Part shown: positions 1 through 40,200 of the stretch, in pieces
How the letters are laid out: every line of letters starts with the position of its first letter
Position numbering within the stretch: position 1 is the stretch's first letter
Notes under the pieces: model-generated
Databases searched by the model: none
What the model was told of the DNA's origin: nothing
The model's input: the letters and a program-made list of their open reading frames with translations, nothing else
Source of the DNA: Mobula hypostoma
Lineage: Eukaryota
Assembly (NCBI RefSeq): GCF_963921235.1
Contig: NW_026948113.1
Span: 434,001 to 498,000 of the forward strand
Direction: 5' to 3'
DNA: 64,000 bases
Made by a program: the position numbers and the translations under genes

Positions 1-399
1 TTAAATTGTTGTCACATGTACTGAGGTACACTGAAAAATCTTTGTACTGCATGCCATCCACAGATAATTGCATTACAATTGCACATTGAGATAATACAAG
101 GGGCAAAAATAGCAAAATGGAAAGCAACTTGTAACAGTTACAGAGGAAGTAGAGAGCAGGCACACAGTAAGGAGCAAGGGCCACAGTATGGTTGATCGTG
201 ACATCAAAGGTTAAACGTGCCGTACTATGGAACTCTACAATACTGTTATAACAGCAAAATAGAAGCTGTCCTTGATCATCAGTGTGTGCTTTCAGGCTTT
301 CGTACCTTCTGCTCAGCAGAAGGTGGGGGAAGAAGAAAGAATTTATGGTGCAGGCGATGTCTTATTCACTGGAGCTTAGGAGAATGGGGTGATCTTATG

Positions 400-850
400 C
401 ATATTAACGAAGGAAGGAAGTCATTAAACTGGAAAAGGTGTACAAAATATTCTCAAGAACGTTGCCAAGAAAGGTACACTTGAATTAGAAGGGGAGGTAG
501 CATAGCTTGGCATTATTTTCCCTTGAATGTAAGAGGTTGAGATATATAGAAAAACGTATAAAATCATAAAGAGCATAGAGAGGATGAATGCACAATCTTT
601 TTCCCAGGATTTGGGCATCAGGAACTTTAGGACAAAGGTTTAAGGTGATTAGTGAAAAATTATAATAGAAACCGGAGGGCCAACATTCTCAAGCAGAAGT
701 TGTCAGCACAGGGAAGGAGATGCAAGAGAAAGTGGTTTTGGCAGCTACATTAACAACATTTTAAACAAAAAAAAAAAAATCACTGGAACCAGTAGGTAGA
801 CAGGAAATGTTTGGTAGTATATGGGCCATGGTAGGAATCTTGGTTGGCAT
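400..850 (+). mobile_element. Decayed CR1-type LINE 3' fragment
   Basis: Sequence resembles the CR1 RT C-terminal region and 3' tail seen in younger copies in this window. Boundaries approximate. Confidence 0.6.
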
Positions 851-1529
851 AGACCAGTTGTGCAGATGGCCTGTTTTTGTTCCGTAAGGGTCTATGACTT
901 CTCTAAATGTCAGTCATTTCTCAGCCAGGCAGTGGCCATTGGACAGTCAGACCTTGACCCACAGGCCCAATCACTTCTCAGTTGTTTCTTTCCTTGAGCA
1001 TCTATTATGTTTCTTTGGCCCATAACTCATAATTGCTTCTTACGACTGAACACAAACAAGAGAAAATCTGAAGATACTGTAACCTTGTAAATAATAACTT
1101 TCAGCAAGGACATGGGACATGTTTTTTGAAGAAAGAAACTTTCAGAGGCGTGTAAGAGAAGAATGGAGCTACTTGATCAGCTCTTTCAAAGTGGTAGACA
1201 CGGTGGTAAAGAAAGCCTACAGGATTTATTAATCAGGGCATAAAATATAATTTGTTTTATTTAGAGAAACAGTACAGACCAGGCCCTGCTGGACCAATGC
1301 ACTACACCATCCAACAACCCACCTATTTAACACCTGTCTCATCATAGGACAATTTACAATGACGAATTAACCCACTAGCTGGTACGTCTGTGGACTATGG
1401 GAGGAAGCCGGAGCAGCCAGAGGATATCCAGGCAGTTCATGGAGAGAACGTGCAAACTCTTACAGACGGCATTGGAACTGAACTCTGAACTACACTACCA
1501 TGGTGTTCTGTGAAGCTCTGGTACAGCTT

Positions 1530-2170
1530 TACTGAGGAGATGCATCATCGGGTCAGTCAAAGAGGTAGGTATAGTGATGAACAAAGTGTACAGGATACGA
1601 GTGTTCATTAATATGGGCACAGAATACAAAACCAAGGAAATTAGGGTACAGCTTTACAAAACATTACCTAGGCTACATCCCAAGTACTTGATGCATTTGT
1701 GGTCACCAGCCCAGAGGAACAATTTGATTGCATGGGACAGAGTACACAGGATATTCACCAGGATTTTATTGGGATGCAATGTTTCAGTGAAGAGGCCAGG
1801 TTTGATTTCCCTGAACGGGAGGAGGCTGAGAGAGGAGCTGATGGCATTATACAAAATTGTTAGGGGCATTGAAAGGAAAGATGTACAAAATGCTGAAAGA
1901 GCAAAGCTTTTTTTTACTGCAGTAGTTTGTATACTGCTCCCACTTAATTTCTTTTATAAAACAGCAGCAAACTTTTCCCCATAGCAGAGGTGCTTATTAC
2001 TGTAGAGGTAGGTTTAAGGCAAGGATTAAGAGATTTAGAGAGAATAGAGAGAAGATTTTTTTTTAATTAATGGGTTAGCGGGAGATGGGAATGCTCTGCC
2101 TAAGGGGCTGGTATAGGCAGACACTCTCACAGCGTTTAAAAATTATTTTGATATCTACGAAGTATAAGAA
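1530..2170 (+). mobile_element. Decayed CR1-type LINE 3' fragment
   Basis: ORF 1574..1984 contains 'EYKTKEIRVQLYKTL.RLHPKY' and 'RRLREELMALYKIVRGI', matching the CR1 ORF2 C-terminus. Confidence 0.75.
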
Positions 2171-2461
2171 GCTGCAGAGAATTGTTGACACAGTCAGCTC
2201 CATCATGGGCAGAACCCACCCCACCACCGAAGACATCTTCAAGCGGTAGTGCTTCAAGAAGGTGGCATCTATTACTCAGGACCCTTGCCATCTGGGACAT
2301 GCCCTCTTCTCCTTTAATGCAATCAGGGAAAAGGTACAGGACTCACAAAGAAGACACTAATCAGAAACAACAGGAATTCTGCAGCTGCTGGAAATTCAAG
2401 CAACACACATCAAAGTTGCTGGTGAACGCAGCAGGCCGGGCAGCATCTCTAGCAAGAGGTG

Positions 2462-2499
2462 CAGTCGACGTTTCAGGCTGAGACCCTTCGTCAGGACTA
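2462..2499 (-). ncRNA. Minimal type I hammerhead ribozyme (PLE terminus)
   Basis: UAGUC-CUGACGA-AGGGUCUCAGCCU-GAAAC-GUC/GACUG: complete core, stem II present, stem I pairs. Confidence 0.75.
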
Positions 2500-2792
2500 A
2501 CTGAAGGAAGAGTGAGTCAGGGATTTGAAAGTTGGAGGGGGAGGGGGAGATCCAAAATGATAGGAGAAGACAGGAGGGGGAGGGATGGAGCCAGGAGCTG
2601 GACAGGTGATTGACAAAAGGGATACGAGAGGATCATGGGACAGGAGGTCCGGGGAGAAAGACAAGGAGCTGGGGGACCCAGAGGATGGGCAAGGGGTATA
2701 TTCAGAAGGACAGAGAGAGAAAAAGGAGAGTGAGAGAAAGAATGTGTGTATAAAAATAAATAACAGATGGGGTATGAGGGGGAGGTGGGGCA

Positions 2793-3086
2793 TCAGCAGA
2801 AGTTAGAGAAGTCGATGTTCATGCCATCAGGTTGGAGGCTACCCAGACGGAATATAAGGTGTTGTTCCTCCAACCTGAGTGTGGCTTCATCATTACAGTA
2901 GAGGAGGCCGTGGATAGACATGTCAGAATGGGAATGGGATGTGGAATTAAAATGTGTGGCCACTGGGAGATCCTGCTTTCTCTGGTGGACAGAGCGTAGG
3001 TGTTCAGCAAAGCGGTCTCCCAGTCTGCGTCGGGTCTCGCCAATATATAAAAGGCCACATCGGGAGCACCGGACGCAGTATATCAC
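2793..3086 (-). CDS. PLE GIY-YIG endonuclease domain (fragment)
   Basis: 'IYCVRCSRCGLLYIGETRRRLGDRFAEH...ATHFNSTSH...EEQHLIFRLGSLQPDGMN'. Confidence 0.9.
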   Translation of the reverse strand: MIYCVRCSRCGLLYIGETRRRLGDRFAEHLRSVHQRKQDLPVATHFNSTSHSHSDMSIHGLLYCNDEATLRLEEQHLIFRLGSLQPDGMNIDFSNFC

Positions 3087-4086
3087 CCCAGCCGACTCAC
3101 AGGTGAAGTGTTACCTCACCTGGAAGGACTGTTTGGGGCCCTGAATAGTGGTAAGGGAGGAAGTGTAAGGGCATGTGTAGCACTTGTTCCGCTTACATGG
3201 ATAAGTGCCAGGAGGGAGATCAGTGGGGAGGGATGGAGGGGATGAATGGACAAGGGAGTCGCGTAGGGAGCGATCCCTGCTGAATGCAGAGGGTGGGGGA
3301 GGGAAAGATGTGCTTAGTGGTGGGATCCCGTTGGAGGTGGCGGAAGTTACGGAGAATAATATGTTGGACCCGGAGGCTGGTGGGGTGGTTGGTGAGGACC
3401 AGGGGAACCCTATTCCTAGTGGGGTGGCGGGAGGATGGAGTGAGAGCAGATGTACGTGAAATGGGGGAGATGCGTTTAAGAGCAGAGTTGATAGTGGAGG
3501 AAGGGAAGCCCCTTTCTTTAAAAAAGGAAGACATCTCCCTCGTCCTAGAATGAAAAGCCTCATCCTGAGAGCAGATGCGGTGGAGACGGAGGAATTGCGA
3601 GAAGGGGATACTCTCGCAGCTATCTGGACTATTCCTCTTCTCACCCTGTCTCTTGCAAAAATGCCATCCCCTTCTCGCAATTCCTCAGTCTCCGCCGCAT
3701 CTGCTCTCAGGATGAGGCTTTTCATTCTACATTCCGTCTGGGTAGCCTCCAACCTGATGGCATGAACGTCGACTTGTCTAACTTCCACTAATACCCCACC
3801 TCCCCGTCGTAACCCATCTGTTACTTATTTTTATACACACATTCTTTCTCTCACTCTCCTTTTTCTCCCTCTGTCCCTCTGAATATACCCCTTGCCCATC
3901 CTCTGGGTTCCCCCGCCCTCCTTGTCTTTCTTCCCGGACCTCCTGTCCCATGATCCTCTCTTATCCCTTTTGCCAATCACCTGTCCAGCTCTTGGCTCCA
4001 TCCCTCCCCCTCCTGTCTTCTCCTATCATTTTGGATATCCCCCTCCCCCTCCAACTTTCAAATCCCTTACTCACTCTTCCTTCAGT

Positions 4087-4124
4087 TAGTCCTGACGAAG
4101 GGTCTCGGCCTGAAACGTCGACTG
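4087..4124 (+). ncRNA. Minimal type I hammerhead ribozyme (PLE terminus)
   Basis: UAGUC-CUGACGA-AGGGUCUCGGCCU-GAAAC-GUC/GACUG. Predicted cleavage after 4119. Confidence 0.75.
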
Positions 4125-4765
4125 CACCTCTTCCTAGAGATGCTGCTTGGCCTGCTGCGTTCACCAGCAACTTTGATGTGTGTTGCTCTAATCAGAAACA
4201 TCTTCTTTTCTTCCACCATTCATGAATGGTCATGAACCCATGAACACAACCTCATTATTCCAATTTTTGCACTAATTACTTCATTTTATAATTTATGTTA
4301 TCTTTCAGTCATGGAGAACTGCAGCACAGAAGCAGTCCATTTGGCCCATCTAGTCTGTCAAAATGCCATTCTGCTTATTCCCTTCAATCCACACCTGGGT
4401 CTAGACCTACATACTCTTCTCATCCACGCACCTTGGGCTGGCAGTCTTCCCTCCAGCTAGTAAATCTCACTAATAGTTACAGTATCATAATTTCATGAGT
4501 TGGTCCATGTTCTGAGCTCATACGCCTTTTATGTCTTTGCACTGTACTGCTGTTGCAAAAGATCAATTTTCATATCATAATTCTGACAAGCACTTGAATC
4601 ATCGAGGAAGAGAAGGCCGAAGTACAGACCAAGTACTGGTTGGAGCAGACTGGCACCAGAGGGTCAGCATGTATGTGGTGAGCCAAATGGCCTCCTTCAG
4701 TACTGTATGAATTTATGAACCACCACAACAGAATGAAGCAAATTCTGTACCGTACAATGACCTAC

Positions 4766-5040
4766 CTCCCTGCACCATCAGTACCCCAGCAGGCTGCTGT
4801 GCTTGACGTGACAGATATAGATGTTCGTATCATTATCCTGCAGCTCAATGACTAGTTCCATCCAGTATGTATCATTGTAGTTTGGTAGCACGGTCACCTC
4901 ATAGCCCTTGGAGACAACCTGTCCATTCTTCAGCCAAGTGGCATTGATAGCACGAGGGTAGAAGGGAGTGATGATGTATGGGAGACTCTCACCCTCAGTA
5001 GCTGTTGGCCTCTTTTTCAACACCTGAACCTCTGGAGCAA
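4766..5040 (-). pseudogene. MHC class I-like alpha3 (Ig C1) exon; first Cys replaced by Tyr, 1-nt frameshift near the 3' end
   Basis: Acceptor ttcattcttccccAG then phase-1 exon 'VAPEVQVL...SLPYIITPFYPRAINATWLKNG...VLPNYNDTY...YICHVKHSSL'. Donor GTAGGT at 4765-4760. Length 275 nt (3n-1). Confidence 0.88.
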
Positions 5041-5825
5041 CTGGGGAAGAATGAAGAATTAACGTCACTAACTCAACACAAACGTATATTATCTTACCAT
5101 TACAAATGGAAGTTACAGTGTCCAAGAGTGGGATTCTTACTCTTTACTGCCTCAGACCAGGACCTACCTCACCATTAATCACTATCCTGCCCGAAATCAT
5201 CTCCTCAGCTCAAGTCCATGCAGACCATAGCCAGCAGTAATTTTCATTCATCTGACAGGCCTAGATCAAGGTTACAGCCACCATTACCAATTTTTATGTC
5301 ACCCATAGTCCCAAGTCAATATTACCTCATATTCCAAGATTGATCATGCCATAATCACCCCAAATTATGTTTAGTTTACCAGCCTTAATTGGGAGATCCT
5401 TCAAAATTCCTGATCAAGAGATGCCCTCAATGTCCTGGATTGGGAGATCTGTTACTGTGTCTAAATGGAAGTTCCAACACAATCCTTGACTTGGACATCA
5501 TTCGTCACCTTCAACTGAGGTATCCTTCACCCCAGATAAGGAGATCGCTCACCATTCAGAATTGGGAGATCCCCCAGTGTCACAGATTGGGACCTCTGTC
5601 ATCTTCTTAGACCAGAACACTGCTCACCAAATTTGGTCATGGCACTTTGATTGTGAGTCCTCTCATTGTGCTGAATCAAAAACTCCCTCACAAACTCAGA
5701 ATCAGGCTGCCCCCATTCATTTGTGTCAAGACACCCCTGAACATCTCAGACCAGGAGTCCATCAATTGTCTGAAGCAGGAGTTCCCTCACAGAGCTTACA
5801 GTATGTAATCAGATGTTCCATTTGC

Positions 5826-6096
5826 CTTGCCTTTCAAGCTTCTCTCTGCCAAGCCGAAAAACCTTTCTGCAAATACTGGATGCAGCTACTGTTCAGCATA
5901 TAAATTTCAGGAATATCAGCAATATTAACTTGCTGAAGATAATCATTGACCAACATCAGGACACCAGTGGTAATACACTTCCCGGTGGTGAAGTCACAAA
6001 TGAGCTCTCCCAAACCTTGGCAGCCGATCTTGAGGAAGGTTTTGAATGTATTTGCAGACTGCGCGCAGCCCAGAAGCCCCTGGATGTATCTGATGC
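5826..6096 (-). pseudogene. MHC class I-like alpha2 exon (not in ORF track); +1 frameshift near the end
   Basis: Acceptor ggtcctttccAG then '(G)IRYIQGLLGCAQSANTFKTFLKIGCQGLGELICDFTTGKCITTGVLMLVNDYLQQVNIADIPEIYMLNSSCIQYLQK'. Shifting frame by one gives 'VFRLGREKLERQ'. Q96, G100, C101 and C164 align with class I numbering. Length 271 nt, GC donor. Confidence 0.85.
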
Positions 6097-6334
6097 CTGG
6101 AAAGGACCAACAGGTTAATCTGTGTTAGTGGCTGAATATTCCAATTCTTCAACCATTCCCACCTGCATAATGTCCTGCTAAACATGTAAATACCATGTGC
6201 ACTGTCTTGTGCAACACGTTCTCAGTAGGGTGAAGTATTTGACATGTCCCCTTTGACCCTCAGTCATGTTTATTGATGTACAATATAGGCATCACAGCTT
6301 GCTATGGCATCAGGTCTGCTCATGATCACAAGAA

Positions 6335-6539
6335 GAAGAAGAAGAAAGCCCGAGTGGAGTCATTGGGACGCCGTCATGATGGTGTTTTTTTAGCTGGCTT
6401 TCTTATTTTTAAAGAGGCCGAGTTGCTAGCTCGACGCTCAACCCAGCATGAATGGAAAGCGTGCAAGGGAGACGGCTGGATTCGAACTTGGGAGCCTTTG
6501 CTCAGAAGTTCAGTGCTGATGCCACTAGTCCACCGGCTA
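6335..6539 (-). mobile_element. tRNA-derived SINE with (TTC)n tail and 17-bp TSD
   Basis: Box A-like GGTGGACTAGTGG and box B-like AGTTCGAATCC on the minus strand. TSD GCTCATGATCACAAGAA at 6318-6334 and 6540-6556. Confidence 0.8.
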
Positions 6540-6639
6540 GCTCATGATCACAAGAAACTGCAAAAAGTTACGGATACAGATCAGCACACACAGTCTCCCC
6601 GCCTCCATACATTCTACCTACATTTCTTGCTGCTTCAGT

Positions 6640-8810
6640 AAATCAGACAACAAAATCAAAGACCCCATCCATCCACCAGCTTTAAATTGGGGTAGGGCAA
6701 ATTATAAGGGCATTAGGCAGGTACTAAGAAGCGATAATTGAGAACACTTTTTCTCTGGCAAATCTACAATAGACATGTGGAGTGTGTTTAAATATCAATT
6801 TCTAGAGTACAGGAAAAGTATGTTCCTGGTTAGAAAGAAGGACGGGGATGAACCTTGGATGTCCAGAAAGGTAATGAACTTCAACAAGAAGAAAAAGAGA
6901 AGTTATAAAAAGCTTTGGAAGTCAAATCAAACAAAGCATATGAGGAGTATAAACAATCCAGAAAAGAATGAAAGAAGGTAATTAGGAAAGCCAGGAGGGG
7001 CCATGAAAAATCCTTGACAAGTAGCATGAAGGTGAATCCCACGGCATTCTACACATACGTCACAGGATAAAAGGATAAGTAGGGAGAGGGTGGAACTGCT
7101 CAAGGATGAAGTGGGAAATACTTACTTGGATGCTAAGAATGTGAATGAAGTACTTAATAAGCACAGTGCCTCAGTATTTACCGGAGAAAAGGATATGGAG
7201 GACTTGGAGATCAGCACTGAGTGCAAAATACATTAGGGCATTTAGAGGTTAAGGAGAAAGCAGTGTTGGGCATCCTAAATAGGAGTTCCCACACTATCTG
7301 TGACTTGGACATCATTAGGAGTATTAAGGTGGATAAAGCCCCAGGGTTTGATGGGATTTACCCCCGATTCTTGTAGGAGGCAAGAGGTGAGATTTCTGGG
7401 CCCTTGACCAGCATCTTTGTGTCATATCTGGCCACAAGCAAGATTGTAGAGGACTGGTGAGTGGTTAATGTTGTACCGCTATTTAAGATGGGAACAAGGG
7501 AAAATCCTGGGAACTACAGACTGGTGAGTCTCACATCAGTTGTAGGGAAATTATTGAAGAGAATTCTTAGGGACGGGATTATGAGCATTTGGAAACCCAT
7601 GGCCTAATGAGAGAGCCAGCATGGCTTTGTGTGTGGCAAGTTGTGTCTTACCAACCTAACTGAGTTTTCTTTGATAAGGTGACAGAGAGATTGATGAAGG
7701 TAGGGCAGTGGAGGATTTCAGTAAAGCATTTAACAAAGTCCCTCATGGGAGGCTAATCCGGAAGATTAAGATCTATGGTTTCCATGGCAAATTGGCTGTT
7801 TGGATTTGGAACTGGCTTGCACGTAGAAGACAGAGGATGGTGGTTTAAGGGAACTATTCGAGCTTGAGGTCTGTGATTAGTAGAGTTGCACAGGGATTTG
7901 TGCTAGGACCTCTGCTGCTTGAGACGTATATAAATGACCAGGCTGAAAAGTAGATGGATGGGTTGGTAAATTTACGGTTGATACCAAGATTGGTGAAATT
8001 GTGGATAGTGTAGACGACTGGCAAAGGTTACAGCATAATACAGATCAGTTGCAGAAAAAATAGCAGTTGGAGTTTAACCCAGATAAATGTGGGGTGTTGC
8101 ACCTTGTAGGGCAAATGCAAGGATACAGTACTGTTAAGGGCAATGTCCTTAACAGTGTTGCTGAGCAGAGAGCTCTTGGGACCAAGTTCACAGCTCCTTG
8201 AAAGTGGCTACACAGGTCAACAAAGTGGTTAAAATGGAATGCTTGCTTTTATTAGTTGTGGCACTGAGTTCAAATTTCAGGAGGTTATGTTACAATTTAA
8301 TAAATCTCTGGTTCGGTCACATCTGGAGTATTGTCTGTGGATCTGGCCAACCCACTTGAGGAGGATGTTGAGGCTTTGGAGAGGATGATGAAGAGGTTCA
8401 CCAAGATGCTGCCTGGTTTAGAGGGCACATGCTATCACAAGAGGCTGGATTAACATGGGCTTCTTTGGAGCATGGGAGGACAAGGGGTGATCTGATAGAG
8501 GTTAAAGAGGGGCATGATTAGAGAGCATTTGTTCCCCAGGGTTGAAATGTCTAACACCAGAAGACATGTATAGAAGGTGAGAGGTGTTAGGTTCAAGAGG
8601 GATGTGAGGGGTAAGTCTTTTCTTTACTCAGAGTCATCGATGCCTAGTATAGTGGTAGAGGCAAATACATTAAAGGACTTTAAGAGACATTTGGATAGGC
8701 ACATTGATATAAGGAGGATGGATGTATATAGATGTGGTGTAGGTAGGACGGATTAGTGTTTGGGTGTTTTTGATTAGTGTTTTAGCCGGTTCAGCACAAC
8801 ACTGTTGTGC
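6640..8810 (+). mobile_element. Decayed CR1 LINE ORF2 in intron 2 of the class I-like gene
   Basis: Recognisable CR1 RT remnants (KAPG.DG, GNYRLVSLTSVVGKL, QHGFV, D.SKAFNKVPH equivalents) with many stops. Confidence 0.85.
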
Positions 8811-10142
8811 TCTTCTGTGTTCGATGACATTCTCTCTTCTTCCCCATCCCATAGGGCAGAAGATACAAAAGCCTGAAAACATATATCACCGGGGTCAAGG
8901 GCAGCTTTTATCCTGCTGTTATCAGTCTATATATAGTCCCCTGGTACAATAATATGAAATCCTGACCTCACAAACACCCGTATTATGGCTTTACACCTTA
9001 TGGTCTGCTTTCATTGCACTTTCTCTATGACTGTAACAACTCACACTGCATTCTGTTATTGCTTCCTCTTGCACCTCAATGTACTGTGGTAATGAAATGA
9101 CATGTACAGATGGCGTGCAAAATGAAGTTTTTCACTGGACCTTAGCAGATACGACAATAACAAATCAATTTACCAATTTACCATGAAGCACACAAAGCAA
9201 TGGCAAAGAGCATGGGATCACAGTGTTCTGCATGCAGTGTGTGGTACACATGACAGGATCAGTAATGAACATGAGCATGAGAGTGTGGCACAGTGGAATA
9301 TTGATGGTGGAGGGGGTGATCTGTACAGAGTGTACATCATTGCATGATGTAATGCAGGGGTCGTGTTGAAGGACTGTGTACTGCACATCAGTGTGTGGAG
9401 AAGGTAGCACACCAACATCTTTGCTTCGAAGTCTAAGGAGATTCAGCATGTCATTGAAAACTCTGACAAATTTATAGAAATCACATCCTAGTATTGAAAC
9501 TCTCTCCCATTGAGGACATTTACCAGTGAAGGTGACATTCTTCAACAGGGACAACCACCATCAGGGCCGTGTCCTCTTCCCCATGCTGCCATCAAGCATG
9601 AGTTCCAGTAGCCAGAAAACCCACACCTCAAGGTTTAGCACCTTTCCCTCCACTGCCATCAGGTTCTTGAACCAAGCTGAAAAACCCCAACATTACCTCT
9701 AATGATTTTTCTCTCAATTTGCACAAGTATCATTATGTTTTTGTACACATGCAAATTACATGTAATATATTTGAATTTTACTTTATATTAACTTATGTTT
9801 GCTTGACCTGTGCAAGGCCAGAGAGGCAGTGGATCTGATTCTCGCTATTTCTCGGAGAAGATCAGTGTAGAGTGAGCGGTGGGTTCTCAGAAATAGATTC
9901 TCAGTGTGTTTTGAAGGGCAAAATTTCTCTTGCAAATGTGGGATACAAATGGAATGCTTTTAATTGAAGGTAAATATTTGTTATAGGATGTTGAGAGGGC
10001 ATACAACCCTTGAAAGATTTGAAACCAAGGATAGGAATTTTAAAACTGATACAACCTAATTGGGTCCATTGAAAGGTCAACATGTTTTCAGTGTGCAAGT
10101 CACTGTGAGCCTCGAAGAACAGCGGAGATCAAAGACACGTAC

Positions 10143-10391
10143 CAGGCATCGACACAAATGGAGTCAGATTATGAAGAAGTAAGTTTTTAATTATGTCCGG
10201 GATCTCTTTCTGGTTTTTCCAGTTGTTAGCTGAAAAGCCGTCCATGATCCACTCTTGCTTGGCTTCTACCCTCTGGATGGTGCTGTCATAGTAGCATATC
10301 TGCAGGTCATCCAACATCCCAACCATGGAGATGTACAGCAGCTCAGGAATGTTTATCGAATGGAGGTAGAAATATGTCAAGCTGTGGGAGA
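10143..10391 (-). CDS. MHC class I-like alpha1 exon (open, 83 codons)
   Basis: Acceptor ctttttttcAG then phase-1 exon 'SHSLTYFY...SMVGMLDDLQICYYDS...EAKQEW...NWKNQKEI'. Donor GTACGT at 10142-10137. Length 249 nt (3n). Confidence 0.9.
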
Positions 10392-10532
10392 CTGAAAAAA
10401 AGAAGAGAGTGAGAGAGGAGTGTGAGAAAATAACTAAGGATGCCCTCCATTTATAAGGCACAACTCAAAGGTCCGGTGGAAAACTGTCCACTTGCCCAAA
10501 TTAATGCATAGGCACACAGATTAGGCACTCAC

Positions 10533-10597
10533 CACCCCCCAGTGATTGGCTCCCCATCCACGTGGAACCACCACCACTAAAACAGGCCTTATTGCAT
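10533..10597 (-). pseudogene. Probable disrupted leader (signal peptide) exon of the class I-like gene
   Basis: ATG at 10597 and GTGAGT donor at 10532-10527 give a 141-nt intron to alpha1. The hydrophobic 'RPVLVVVV' and the phase-1 end 'WMGSQSLGG' are in different frames. Confidence 0.5.
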
Positions 10598-11336
10598 CGG
10601 CCAGGAATAAATCCCAAGCTGCTCTGGATAGAAGAACCCAACTGCAGTGGGGATGGAAAATGAAGGTTCTCAATCCTCCAAACTATTGAGCAACTTGGGT
10701 ATCACCATTGAAGATGCTTGGATAGGTACACAGATAGGAAATGTTTAGAGGGATATGAGCCAAATGAGCCAAGTTAGATGGTAATCTTGGCTGACATGGA
10801 CCTGTTGGGTCCAAGTGCCTGCTTCTGTGCTGTGAGGATGTAGCAACAACTCTTGACACTGACTAATTGAGGGCTTGTCCAAAATTGAGAGAGCATAGAC
10901 TTAGTACTATCCGGACCTGAACACCATTGTGGATATATCCACACCTTGAGTACTGCACCAGGTCAAAAAGACAGCTCACAGCCACCTTCTCAAGGACATC
11001 TTGGGTTGGGGAATTAAACAGTGGTTCATTTTGTGAATCCATGTCCATGAGTGAATGAAGCAAATAAAATATTTTTTAAATGAAGCCTTATTTACCACAT
11101 ATGTAACACTACTGTAGCACCTGTCTTACTGTGTGCGACTAGTCGCTGCACTCTTTGAGAAAATCAAATTACATAGTACTACACTGGGTGCTAGTAGGCC
11201 ATCAGAAGCTTCTAGGTATCGGAAGGAGGCAGTGAATAGAAACCACATACTTCTGGAGATAAGTTCTGTTTATAAGAAAACAACAATATGTACAAACTAT
11301 TTACATGAGCAAGAACAATTCAAAATTCCAACATTC

Positions 11337-12307
11337 TGTTCAGGTTCTTGATCTTAGATATCAAATCAAAACAAATTCCTTTTTAATTAGAATCAGTGAG
11401 ATTCCTTTATTACTCTAATTTCTCTAACTAATTAGATCTAGTGTAGTTCCCTATTTAAAAGTTTACAGACAACATTTTCCTTTTTACTTATCCCTAGTTA
11501 GTTAGAAAACCAAATATAATTCCTATTCTTAAGCATTATAATTAACTTCAGTTTCATTTCCAGTGTATCTACAAAAATTATATATACACAGTTTAACCCC
11601 TTTCATAATTCTGCAACTTCACAACTTTTAAACAAAGTAAATCTCATTCAGTGACTTATCAAAGTCTTTGCAAAGTAATCAGTTCTTTCAGAAAATCTAA
11701 TTCGGATTCTTTGAATGAAAATGAACTTACACATCCAACCATATTAAATCCTTTGCGTCATTACACATTTCGTTCCTGTGCTGGCTCATTGAATCTTGAG
11801 TAGCTCGCCGAATCTTGAGTAGTTCACCATCTTCTTTTTTGGCTCATTGCAATGATATAGTTTATCATCCACGGCAAGTCAATTCACAAACTTGCACAAA
11901 AACTTGACCAAATCCCTTGGTATGATTTTATAAAACTAATGTCCAGTTACACGGTAGAGATTTTGGACACTCGTCTCTGCTGATATTGTCCCGTTTTTGC
12001 TGCTGCATGTTACAGCCATAGCTTCAATAAATCTTTGATCACTGTTGTCTCTTCTCCAGGGGTTTCACCCTGAGATTTTCAAGTTACCAGGGTAAAGCTA
12101 CGCACTAATAATTCCACTCTTAACAGTTAGTGTCTTCAGCTTCTAATCGTTTCTGCGTTTCTCTCACTGCCCGTGCCTGCGTCAGCCACACCTTGTTCTC
12201 GCACAGCATTTTTTTTTTCAAGTTCTCTTTGGTAAACTTCATTTTCATCCCTCTGCAGGTGGAACTTTCTAACATTACGTCTTTGGGTTTAATTAACCTG
12301 GGTTACA
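11337..12307. mobile_element. LTR-like element (TG...CA)
   Basis: Starts TGTTCA, ends GTTACA. Flanks CATTC / CATAC, a possible 5-bp TSD with 1 mismatch. Confidence 0.4.
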
Positions 12308-17639: not shown

Positions 17640-19200
17640 TGGCGGTAATGCACCTTATGTTGGCCTGCCTACTGCCGTTAAACTTCACAGGGGAAAAAGA
17701 TCTTTTGGAACCCGCGACAGATCTCAAACGCCAGTTGAACATTTTCAGTGATAATTTTATCCCGAACTTAGAGACTCCAGAAATTCCCCAGCATCTTGGA
17801 TTTCCTCTCTAGGACACATGAATGCGATGCACCAGTTCTCCAGTCTAATGGGGGCACGTCTGGGATCTCTGGAAGATTAGGGGTGAGTTTCCAAAGCGCA
17901 ACTCCAGACCTTTAAAACCATCACGCACCCTCGCCTTACCTGCCTGGCTTCCCGCAACAGAGCAGAGAGACAATATGGTGAAAAGGAGCGATCCCGGTCC
18001 GTTCCAACTCTCCATTGCGGTGTCTCCTTACCTCGACAAATCTACTCGTTGGTCAATAAACTGCTGAGGGCGCAGATAAGATTCACGGAGGCAGTTCGGG
18101 AATAAATAGTGCCTGCTACAAGGAGCAGCCAGTAAGAACTCCTGGAACTAAAAATCTTCCTGCAGAAATAACCAGCCCGCCGCTGCTCTGGAGTGTGGAG
18201 GGTGGGAGGCGGGGCGGTAGACAGCCGGCCAGGCACAGGATGTGCAGTGGAGGGTGCGGAGCCGAACCACTTCCAGTAAGGATGTGGGCACATGCAGACC
18301 GCGACAGAGAGGCGCAGGCAGCAACACCCAGTCACTGACACATCTCCGGGCAGGTTTCCAGGACCCTCCCAGGAGATGTTCACCACATACCGGCTCCGGC
18401 CGCTGTATAAAACAGGGGTTCCCAATCTTTTTTAATTCCATCGACCAATATAATTAAGCAAGGGGGCCATGGACCCCAGGCTGGGAATCCCCGCTGTAAA
18501 ACAAAACTGATGCAAGAACTCAGCGGGTCAGGCAGCATCTATGGAGGGAAATGCACAGACGACGTTTTGGGTCAAAGTACTTCATCTAGACTGGAAGGGT
18601 AAAGGGCAGGTAGCCGGCTATGTGAAGGGCTGAGAGTAGAGATAAGATTCCAAAACGTCAACTGACCACTTCCCTCCACACGAGATCCCCCAGAATTTTG
18701 GTTTCTGCTCTAAATTAAAGCGACTACTTATTCACGTGTCTCTGTGCACTCGATTCTCCGGATCTCGTCTCTTGCGCCCTCGCTCCTGGACAACTAGGAT
18801 TACACTTTTGTACAATACACTGCCAGACGCCAGTGCGGACTTCCTTGCAAACTCATTGCTCCCCAAGCTGCACCTATCCCTCTCCCAACCCCCACTTCCT
18901 CACTTGCTTACACCCCACCCTGTCCCTTTCCTACGTGCGCGTTCTTCATTCGTGCACGCGCTCCCGTCCCGCCCAAGCGCTCTCTAACCCCGCACGCTTT
19001 CCCCAACCCTTCCCCACCCCGTACGCTCTCCCACGTTCCTTCATGCATCCCTTCTCTCCCTCATACCCTGTCGACTACACTATGTGCCCTCTCCTCCCTC
19101 TTGAGTTCCCCCACTCAGTTGGAGTCTGCGTGCGGTTCCACACTACAAGAAGGATGTGCGAAGAGTATAGAGGATGGAGAAGAGATGCATCCGAGAACGT
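17640..19200. promoter_or_regulatory. CpG-island, promoter-like region
   Basis: CpG visibly retained against a depleted background. GC boxes GGGAGGCGGGGCGG at 18204-18217, an ETS core near 18268-18274, and a minus-strand donor GAG/GTAAGG at 18031. Confidence 0.55.
18413..18493. mobile_element. Small hAT-like MITE
   Basis: Imperfect TIRs CAGGGGTTCCCAATCT / AGGCTGGGAATCCCCG. TSD only partially matched. Confidence 0.55.
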
Positions 19201-37233: not shown

Positions 37234-40200
37234 ATCAGAGAGCAGTTCAGCAATATTTCTACACTTGTGTTTCATGGAATAGTACAGTCCTTTTGGCCCA
37301 TGATGTTGTTTTGACCAATAAAAATGTACTGCGTGATCAGTCTTAATCTTTCCTCCTAGCACTGCATCAAACCCTCTATTTTTGTTACATCCATGTGCCT
37401 ATCTAAGAGACTTCTAAATATCCCTGTTGTATCAGTATCTACCACCACCCCCAGCAGTGCATTCCAGACACCCGCCATTCACTGTCAGAGAAACTAATTT
37501 TGACATCTCCCATAAACTTCCCTCCCTTCACCTTAAACTGATGTCTCCTGGTATTGACCATTGCCACCTTGGGAAAAAGTTGCTGGAAATTCACTCTATT
37601 GATGCCTCTCATACACCATTATTAAGTCACCTCCCATTCTCCATAGAGAGTACAGGTGCCTTGCCAGAGTGTTGGTATTGATGGAATTTTACGTGATCAG
37701 AGAGCAGTTCAGACGTTTTCCGTACTGTCAAAGGTGTTGCGTTTCAGTTCAAACATTAGACCAATCCTCTTCTGCATCTCAGGTGTAGAAAATCCCACAA
37801 TATGTTTTAAAGAGCAGGAGGGCTGTCACCACATTCAGGCCAATGTTCCCCTCAGCCCACGGCTAAGAAGAGTCTGGTAATTATTTGATTGCTCTGCGTG
37901 GGATCTTGCTGTTCACAGATAGAATACCCCATTCCTACTTCACAACTTGGCTGCACCCCAGCAGGATTTATCGATGGTAAAACACTTCCTGGACATCCCA
38001 TGATAGTGAAAGGGTTAATGGCTTGGAGCTGCTGAATGCCTGAAAAAATCATCAAATGCAGAAATCACATGGATAATAAAAAAATAACTTGTAGCACTTG
38101 GTGACCTTACTTCAAGTTTCAGAACAACCTTTGAGACTGAAGCACTCACTGAACCCAGACACTCCCTGGTCCATATTCAGTGCTGGGATCACGCATATTC
38201 CCCCAATAACTCTCCCCTAGGTGCCTCACAAACACAGGGAGGTAGCACTGAATAACACAGGGATGTCATGTCTGCTTCAAGCATTCCTGCAGTGAGGTGA
38301 GTGAATATCTTTTAGTCACCTGAAGCTGGACAGGAATTTTCCCAAACCCTTGGGACTCCTCATGCCTGTAGAGGTAATCAGCTCAGTCAGGTCAGTCTCC
38401 AGTCTGCTCTTTCCCCTCCATCACAGTCTGTGTTTCAGTCAGAACAAGGCAAAGGGCCAGAGCAGCAACTCTTACAAACATCAGGTGAAGACAGACCCTT
38501 CTGCATATGGGGTTCTTTCCCCTGCATCAGGGTACCGAAACACTTTCTTCAGCCTACATAGCCTGTGCTGAGTATCCATCCCCGTACACAATAATCCCAT
38601 TTTACTCTCCTTCACACTTCTCTACTGCTCCCAGATTCCACTGCTCTCCTGCACACACCAGAGAAACTTTACAGTGACCAAGGTTTGAGATAGAGGAAGG
38701 AACTGGAACCTCTGAGCAGTCACAGGGACAATGTGAAAAAAATCAAACCGACAATTCTGGAGATCAGGATTGAGTCTGGATCACTGGAGTACTGAGGCAT
38801 CATCCTCTGACGGCATTGAGGGAGAGAGGTAGATCATTAGAATGCAAGAAACCTCCTTTGGGGGACGCAAGAAGGAGAGAGAGGTCGCCACACACATATT
38901 GATGAATCTGTTTACAATTATTTTATGATTCTCAGATATTTTCAACTCTAATCTCAAACCGAATTGCTCCATTAGCCAGAGGCTTCTGTTCATATTTTAA
39001 ACTAATGTTGGACCCTCCCAATCTCCATTAAAGAAAGAATTACTTTGGGGTCTCCAGTGTCCACAGCATTCCCACTTCCAGTGAGGTACTTCCAATCACC
39101 CAGCAAAGCTTTCTCTGCTCTGTCCCATGAACTTTCCTTGGCCGCAGCCCTTCACTGCAATGGTCCGATATATGATATTGATGTTTCAGCTAAAGTTGAG
39201 GAGAGCAACTCACCTCAGGTAAGACCTTGTGGATGAGATGCTCAGATTTCAACACACCACAACACTGAAACCTGAATTCTGAGTGAGATGTAAGAGAAAG
39301 TTAAAACTGGTAAAAAGGTGCATTGCAAAGCAGCAGAAGATTAAGCTATTCAACTTCCACACTGATACAACACTAAGTTTACTGAAATACGTGGCCATTC
39401 ATAACCAAACCAGGCTGAGGCTCCACTCTGTGTTCAGAGCTGTGCTTGAGTTCGGGCCAAACACTTATCTACAAAGGAAAAATGAGAAGAGATTGGTTGT
39501 CCAGTACTGTGACAGAAAATAGGATTAGAGAATGGATCTGTGTTTACCCACCTGTAGTAATGCCTTAGCTATCTCTAAGCTGCTCCTCTACATCACTCCA
39601 ATAATTATTGCAAACATAGCTATGAACCGCAGTATGGGACCTGCTCCATGGGGCTCACCGAGTCCTGCCCAACAAGTAAAGTTGGCAAATGTTACGTGAA
39701 CTACAAAGATGATATAGCACAAGAGAGGGTGTAGGGGAGAACTGCAAAGTCTGGGTACTTTTGTTTTTGAGGACAATTGAGCAGTTGCAGTTGCTTCTTA
39801 GGAGCAGAGGATATTAAAGGGAGATATGAAAAGCTGTAAGGGTCCAGGATGCAGTAGACAGGAAATCTATTAACAAAATAGTCTAAAGTAAAAGGCTGAG
39901 ATCAAAAATAATCGGCGGGGTTGGAGGGGAAATAAAACCTTAAGAAGGAATATCTGGGAATCATGACAAAATTGGAAAGATTGCCCTATGGTCCTCATTG
40001 ATGTGATTAAACTGGAAAATGATTATGGGGAAATAGACCATTAGTGGAAGTAGTTTAAAGGCCAGGTTAGAAGATCAGGGTAGTAAATCGGTTCATGAGG
40101 TGTTTTGATTGCTGTCCCTTCTCAGTCATGGTAGCGCCAGCCTGAGGAATAACAAGGACAGTCTGTTTCCCAGTGCACTGTTCTGTGTTTCTTTGGATCG

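Follow-up and report, generated by a model that had tools for sequence, protein, structure and literature searches.

The segment running from 6096 to 5826 on the minus strand of the analysed DNA, a stretch of 64,000 nucleotides from the lesser devil ray Mobula hypostoma (NCBI RefSeq assembly GCF_963921235.1, contig NW_026948113.1, positions 434,001 to 498,000) that we call the window, is the alpha2 exon of a non-classical MHC class I gene of the elasmobranch UFA (CD1-like) lineage, in a copy that is most likely a pseudogene. We favour a pseudogene since the copy combines a frameshift in alpha2, the loss of one base in alpha3, the replacement of a cysteine by a tyrosine in the same domain and the lack of any anchor exon in the 4.7 kb downstream. 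The object itself is ordinary, being a decaying copy of a known and already annotated gene lineage. The main import of the analysis is a correction of the annotation, in which a 198-aa patchwork model hides that the copy is broken.

The alpha2 exon and its assignment to UFA

The alpha2 exon occupies 5826..6096 on the minus strand (271 nt, versus 270 nt in the shark UFA exon). It follows an acceptor AG at 6098-6097 that is preceded by a pyrimidine tract, and both of its borders are in phase 1. By translating the minus strand from 6097, we read GIRYIQGLLGC ... CDFTTGKC ... SSCIQYLQK, with Gly at exon residue 1, Gln at 6, Gly-Cys at 10-11 and the second conserved Cys at 72. The cysteines at exon residues 11 and 72 are the equivalents of HLA C101 and C164, and they align with both cysteines of the shark structure 8GM8 and with those of all relatives; the disulfide feature of MHC class I is thus present in the window copy. 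The landmarks on which the original prediction had been built, that is the G..Q..GC series and a spacing of 61 between the two cysteines, were all reproduced. The tryptophan that it had placed 31 residues before the second Cys was not found, a cysteine being there instead, namely the second Cys of a C-x6-C pair.

As a side observation, alpha2 of the ray sub-group contains five cysteines, the canonical pair being accompanied by those at exon residues 26, 34 and 41. The C-x6-C pair is common to shark UFA 8GM8, and the fifth cysteine (IGCQ) is unpaired and missing from 8GM8 and from the P0009-type paralogues.

By using phmmer with the 78 in-frame alpha2 residues as query against 1.84 billion representative proteins, we obtained two matches. 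The best one was to residues 110-186 of a Hemitrygon akajei protein (XP_072885753, 315 aa, named 'CD1d-like') with an E-value of 9.5e-37 and 87% identity, and the second was to a bamboo-shark protein (E 1.6e-08). The H. akajei protein has a sub-threshold MHC_I match across alpha1-alpha2, then a clear C1-set domain, and the bamboo-shark protein has a C1-set domain together with a sub-threshold MHC_I match over part of alpha1-alpha2. When phmmer was run against the PDB, the best match was chain 8gm8_A for alpha1 (residues 2-81, E 2.7e-14), for alpha2 (residues 84-164, E 4.2e-07) and for alpha3 (residues 177-258, E 2.2e-19). At the DNA level, the alpha2 exon is 77% identical to the shark alpha2 exon, both splice sites included. 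The similarity to class I alpha2 that the prediction called for is therefore clear, both among proteins (E 9.5e-37) and among structures (E 4.2e-07), and homology confirms the stretch 5826-6096 as a genuine MHC class I alpha2 exon.

The check with the Pfam MHC_I profile (PF00129) that had been proposed at the same time came out negative, as the alpha2 exon alone gave no match at E<=10; alpha1 alone scored 20.6 bits (E 3.7e-4), below the gathering score of 28.3. Since intact full-length relatives likewise score 18.7-25.8 bits, also under the 28.3 cut-off, the test is too insensitive for this lineage and the miss is no refutation.

Then, we considered which class I lineage the gene belongs to. 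In the Foldseek titles, 8GM8 is 'shark nonclassical MHC class I, UFA' and the runner-up, 9CH4, is 'UGA'. The M. birostris orthologue XP_072113434.1 (P0005) matched 8GM8 with an E-value of 2.5e-62 (214 bits), UGA (9CH4) with 1e-30 (110 bits) and classical class I with about 1e-25, the PDB chains other than UFA and UGA reaching at most 93 bits. In the AF2 model of this orthologue, the alpha2 residues form four strands and a kinked helix with pLDDT values of 79-86. The extra alpha2 C-x6-C pair reads CDFTTGKC in the window, CDLFTVRC in 8GM8 and CDMVTVHC in the bamboo shark. Three features place the gene in the UFA lineage: it resembles 8GM8 most closely, it carries the additional C-x6-C pair, and its exon plan agrees. 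UFA is described as an MHC-linked class Ib lineage that is CD1-like in its binding region (PMC10751288; PMC12562908), and one of these papers, a review, states that it holds lipid, as CD1d does, within a hydrophobic groove and associates with beta2-microglobulin (PMC12562908), the UFA statements in both papers resting on unpublished data or personal communication only.

Gene plan, splice sites and annotation

By placing retrieved ray proteins on the window with tblastn, we located four exons on the minus strand. The leader (signal peptide) exon lies at 17940..18015 (76 nt, ATG at 18015-18013, donor G|GTAAGG), reads MESWNGPGSLLFTILSLCSVAGSQA and splices in frame to alpha1; 23 of its 24 residues are identical to those of P0005, and identity to the stingray proteins XP_072885753.1 and XP_059826634.1 (P0001 and P0003) is 84-88%. 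The alpha1 exon lies at 10143..10391 (249 nt, phase 1 to phase 1, donor CTG|GTACGT). Downstream of alpha2, the alpha3 (Ig C1-set) exon lies at 4766..5040 (275 nt versus 276 nt in the shark), with its acceptor AG at 5042-5041 and a donor GAG|GTAGGT, and is recognized by the Pfam C1-set profile with an E-value of 1.4e-11. All junctions are in phase 1, and the split codons G|TC, G|GC and G|TT give Val, Gly and Val, respectively, G|GC being made of the last base of alpha1 (10143) and the start of alpha2, and G|TT of the end of alpha2 and the first bases of alpha3 (5040). The window gene thus follows the class I plan of one exon per domain (leader, alpha1, alpha2, alpha3) with phase-1 introns. Since the exons are collinear, phase-1 compatible and have the same proteins as best matches, their arrangement supports the view that leader, alpha1, alpha2 and alpha3 make up one minus-strand class I-like gene. 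The earlier proposal that alpha2 joins the alpha1 and alpha3 hits into a single gene holds in this respect, but the frameshift described below means that the joined gene is not intact.

Beyond these exons, the only class I exon found anywhere in the window was a tail exon at 39.6 kb, an orphan, and tblastn at E<=50 with 27 family proteins recovered nothing class I-like from 1-4766. The orphan exon (39588-39664, minus strand, 77 nt, good acceptor ttgggcAG|GA, TAG stop) encodes GLGEPHGAGPILRFIAMFAIIIGVM, which is 64-68% identical to the hydrophobic tails of Mobula UFA proteins of the P0009/P0011 type. The part of the window upstream of it (39.7-64 kb) contains no alpha1-alpha3 exons, and it may be a relic or else the terminal exon of a gene that has a very long intron. 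The surroundings of the UFA gene are rich in transposons: intron 2 is filled with reverse-transcriptase-like ORFs (about 7460-8400), copies of a repeat lie in inverted orientation just 3' of alpha3 (2573-2691 on the plus strand and 3893-4010 on the minus strand), and a GIY-YIG-like ORF at 2793-3086 on the minus strand (..CGLLYIGETRRRLGDRFAEHL..) is typical of Penelope-like retroelements.

The ancestral end of alpha2 is followed by a non-canonical GC splice donor (5824..5825, minus strand, AAG|GCAAAT). At the matching codon, the bamboo-shark UFA-type locus L001 reads AAAAG|GCAAGT, and its annotated protein (P0002) needs that junction. Ray and shark have almost the same first ten intron bases after alpha2, which makes the GC donor an inherited feature and not a lesion. 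Judging from these two intron starts, a GC-AG intron between alpha2 and alpha3 may be a hallmark of UFA kept since the split of sharks and rays. Gene finders that accept GT only will tend to end the alpha2 exon of UFA genes wrongly.

Three things account for the exon having been missed by the ORF track, that is a start-to-stop ORF (5834-6013) whose 59 aa fall just under the default minimum of 60, the frameshift, and a GC donor instead of GT. The exon was nevertheless hidden in part only: its longer part is unannotated, but its first 81 nt are already included in RefSeq XP_062894932.1 (P0018, 'T-cell surface glycoprotein CD1c-like', M. hypostoma, 198 aa), which models this locus. Over alpha1, alpha3 and the first 27 codons of alpha2, the sequence of this protein agrees with the window at every residue (100% identity). 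It is recorded on a 516,489-bp scaffold of GCA_963921235.1, and its span of 6957 nt corresponds exactly to 11734..4778. The model starts with an ATG plus one T at 11731..11734 on the minus strand (ATGT|GTAAGT), so that the protein begins MF-SHSL, and this ATG at 11734 is probably a modelling patch and not the true start. It then takes 81 nt of alpha2 (6016..6096, minus strand), leaves the exon through an internal donor CAAG|GTTTGG (GT at 6015-6014) to alpha3, reads ...GIRYIQGLLGCAQSANTFKTFLKIGCQ|VAPEV across the junction and ends at the TGA at 4780-4778. Compared with the window gene, it is without the leader exon at 18015 and without 190 of the 271 nt of alpha2; what is missing from the public model is thus the genuine signal-peptide exon, together with two thirds of alpha2.

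Lesions of the window copy and their history

As a reference for lesions we used the bamboo-shark locus L001, with an alpha2 of 270 nt and an alpha3 of 276 nt. First, when the frames of P0001, P0005 and the second M. hypostoma protein XP_062905767.1 (P0024) are followed, the window copy has an extra base (+1) in or adjoining a run of five T at 5857..5861 on the minus strand, and a single-base gap is seen when the exon is aligned with the shark exon DNA. Orthologues read LQKGLQLGREELERQ and QKGL-QLGREELERQ at the end of alpha2, and the window reads QKGF, then slips by one base to RLGREKLERQ, the other frame at the 3' end being ...KVFRLGREKLERQ up to 5827. The one-base shift of the original prediction is therefore real, but its position (LQK|VFRL) was off, homology placing it a few bases further 3' (QKGF|RLG). 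The incoming frame continues after ...YLQKGF with SAWQREA and meets a premature TGA at 5836-5834 (5834..5836, minus strand, in frame from alpha1), and the spliced leader, alpha1 and alpha2 would yield a product ending in ...YLQKGFSAWQREA*.

Second, comparison of frames shows that one base has been lost towards the end of alpha3, at 4778..4787 on the minus strand, which creates a TGA (4780-4778). The missing base is near 4784-4782, where orthologues read SSLPGALMVQGG; the main frame ends HSSLLGY* (SSLLG, then TAC TGA), and the next frame reads LMVQG, comparable to ...ALMVQGG in the orthologue. The frame across the ancestral junctions is thus interrupted twice, by the TGA at 5836-5834 after a gain of one base and by the TGA at 4780-4778 after a loss of one.

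Third, the codon for the first Ig-domain cysteine of alpha3 is TAC (Tyr; 4976..4978, minus strand). The region reads SLPYIIT in the window and SLAYIIT in P0024, compared with SLSCIIT in P0005, P0001 and P0009 and LLCLIT in 8GM8. This residue is Cys in the 18 other family rows and in 8GM8, and Tyr in the window copy and P0024 only, so the window copy lacks the two-cysteine pattern of a C1-set domain. Fourth, we found no anchor or tail exon in positions 1-4766 of the window, either by Smith-Waterman comparison of seven tails in six frames or by tblastn at E<=50, these searches giving only chance-level matches inside a repeat. The alpha3 frame terminates before any membrane or GPI anchor.

To place the window copy among its relatives, we used a maximum-likelihood tree, in which it is sister to P0024 (80/89) within a Mobula clade (97/96), itself nested in a ray sub-group with two stingray proteins (100/100). 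The end branches were 0.056 for the window copy and 0.051 for P0024, and 0-0.021 for the manta copies. We also counted private residue changes in relative-rate comparisons, for which the stingrays served as outgroup. The window copy had 15 private changes versus 3 in P0005 (p 0.0075) and P0024 had 14 versus 2 (p 0.004), the excess being smaller against the other M. birostris copy (12 versus 4, p 0.077). On these residue counts and branch lengths, the rate excess of the M. hypostoma copies speaks for relaxed constraint, although it could also reflect positive selection.

Since the alpha3 lesions are common to the window copy and XP_062905767.1, they are older than the split of the two copies. 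We propose that they would have arisen once in the M. hypostoma line, that the copies would then have parted, through duplication or as very divergent haplotypes, and that both would have drifted afterwards. The alpha2 frameshift would be a later hit, confined to the window copy. As it stands, the locus presumably makes no functional antigen-presenting molecule, and transcripts using the ancestral junctions would be substrates of nonsense-mediated decay.

Against a pseudogene speak several features of the locus: the leader and alpha1 are intact, every splice site looks usable, an anchor exon could sit past the window edge, and RefSeq calls the locus protein-coding, though its 198-aa model is implausible. 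In addition, the single extra base in alpha2 could be an assembly error. In that case the locus would encode a tail-less, secreted class I-like protein of ~285 aa, like XP_062905767.1, and the M. hypostoma copies would be functional, anchorless and fast-evolving. The frame of P0024, which stays open from the leader to the end of alpha3 in spite of about 10% divergence, and the position of the stop, which in both copies coincides with the alpha3 domain end, agree with this account. However, a five-base homopolymer is an unlikely error site in a modern long-read assembly, the first Ig cysteine has become Tyr in both M. hypostoma copies while it is Cys in the other 18 family rows, and lineage-specific changes are about 3 to 7 times as numerous in the two M. 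hypostoma copies as in those of the manta. We therefore consider it unlikely that an assembly error conceals a working gene. That both M. hypostoma copies are alive, as a lineage-specific secreted CD1-like form that has given up its anchor and Ig disulfide and evolves fast under selection, seems to us quite unlikely.

The copy might also function through splicing around the frameshift, with a shortened alpha2 that ends either at donor 6016|GT or at the in-frame GT 5863|5862. Both donors hold phase 1 (exon pieces of 81 nt and 234 nt) and RefSeq took the first of them, but their sequences are weak (GTTTGG and GTTTTT). Moreover, donor 6016 deletes the last two strands of alpha2 and its whole helix, and donor 5863 takes away the final 12 helix residues, a stretch (LGRE.LERQ) that all relatives conserve. 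The product would still be without the Ig cysteine and the anchor, and the RefSeq model is without a true signal peptide, all of which makes a rescue by splicing very unlikely. Finally, that G..Q..GC and a late Cys occur in an open stretch by coincidence, in line with an alpha2 exon that Pfam MHC_I does not match by itself even at E<=10, is refuted by matches far beyond chance to the alpha2 residues of a class I-like ray protein (E 9.5e-37), to the UFA crystal structure 8GM8 (E 4e-07) and to the shark alpha2 exon (77% nucleotide identity), and has next to no probability.

Thus, a pseudogene remains our preferred reading of the window copy. This sub-group of UFA genes looks intact and multi-copy in manta (M. 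birostris), and both copies seen in M. hypostoma carry shared disabling changes; if this is confirmed, M. hypostoma would offer a natural loss useful for studying the function of UFA.

Comparison with ray relatives, CD1 and shark UFA

Among the closest known systems are the ray proteins. Exon by exon, M. birostris XP_072113434.1 (P0005, 315 aa) is 88-96% identical to the window, and the stingray proteins XP_072885753.1 and XP_059826634.1 (P0001, P0003) are 76-88% identical to it, with the exons in the same order in all of them. In contrast to the window gene, which is without both features, P0005, P0001 and P0003 are intact and have the Ig cysteine and a hydrophobic tail of 25 residues (..GEPRGAGPLLGLM...KVV). 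A short hydrophobic C-terminal exon without cytoplasmic tail is present in P0001, P0003, P0005 and P0009.

The M. birostris relatives are intact, that is P0005 and both halves of XP_072115050.1 (P0023). The latter is a 581-aa RefSeq model of the same sub-group, composed of a leader, two successive alpha1-alpha2-alpha3 units and a tail, in which the first alpha3 runs in frame into the second alpha1 (..LMVQG|VSHSL..). The model is the product of a read-through across tandem copies, or else the gene really has two ectodomains.

Within M. hypostoma, XP_062905767.1 (P0024, 285 aa), which is located on a 199-Mb chromosome, has its alpha2 in frame (..YLQKGLWLGREELQRQ), with about 10% of its residues differing from those of the window copy. 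The two share the Cys-to-Tyr change and the SSLLG-stop ending, P0024 terminating as HSSLLGH.

RefSeq names several ray proteins 'CD1d-like' or 'CD1c-like', after mammalian and avian CD1. Neither in sequence nor in fold are CD1 chains the closest matches; MR1 and classical class I chains rank no lower.

Shark UFA (8GM8) is about 40% identical to the window copy and has no fifth alpha2 cysteine (IGCQ). Compared with it, the window copy is broken, with one base gained in alpha2, one lost in alpha3, a Cys changed to Tyr and no tail exon. The alpha2 cysteine pair, the C-x6-C pair and an alpha2 end of the form ..G+..LER+ are nonetheless common to shark UFA, the window copy and its orthologues.
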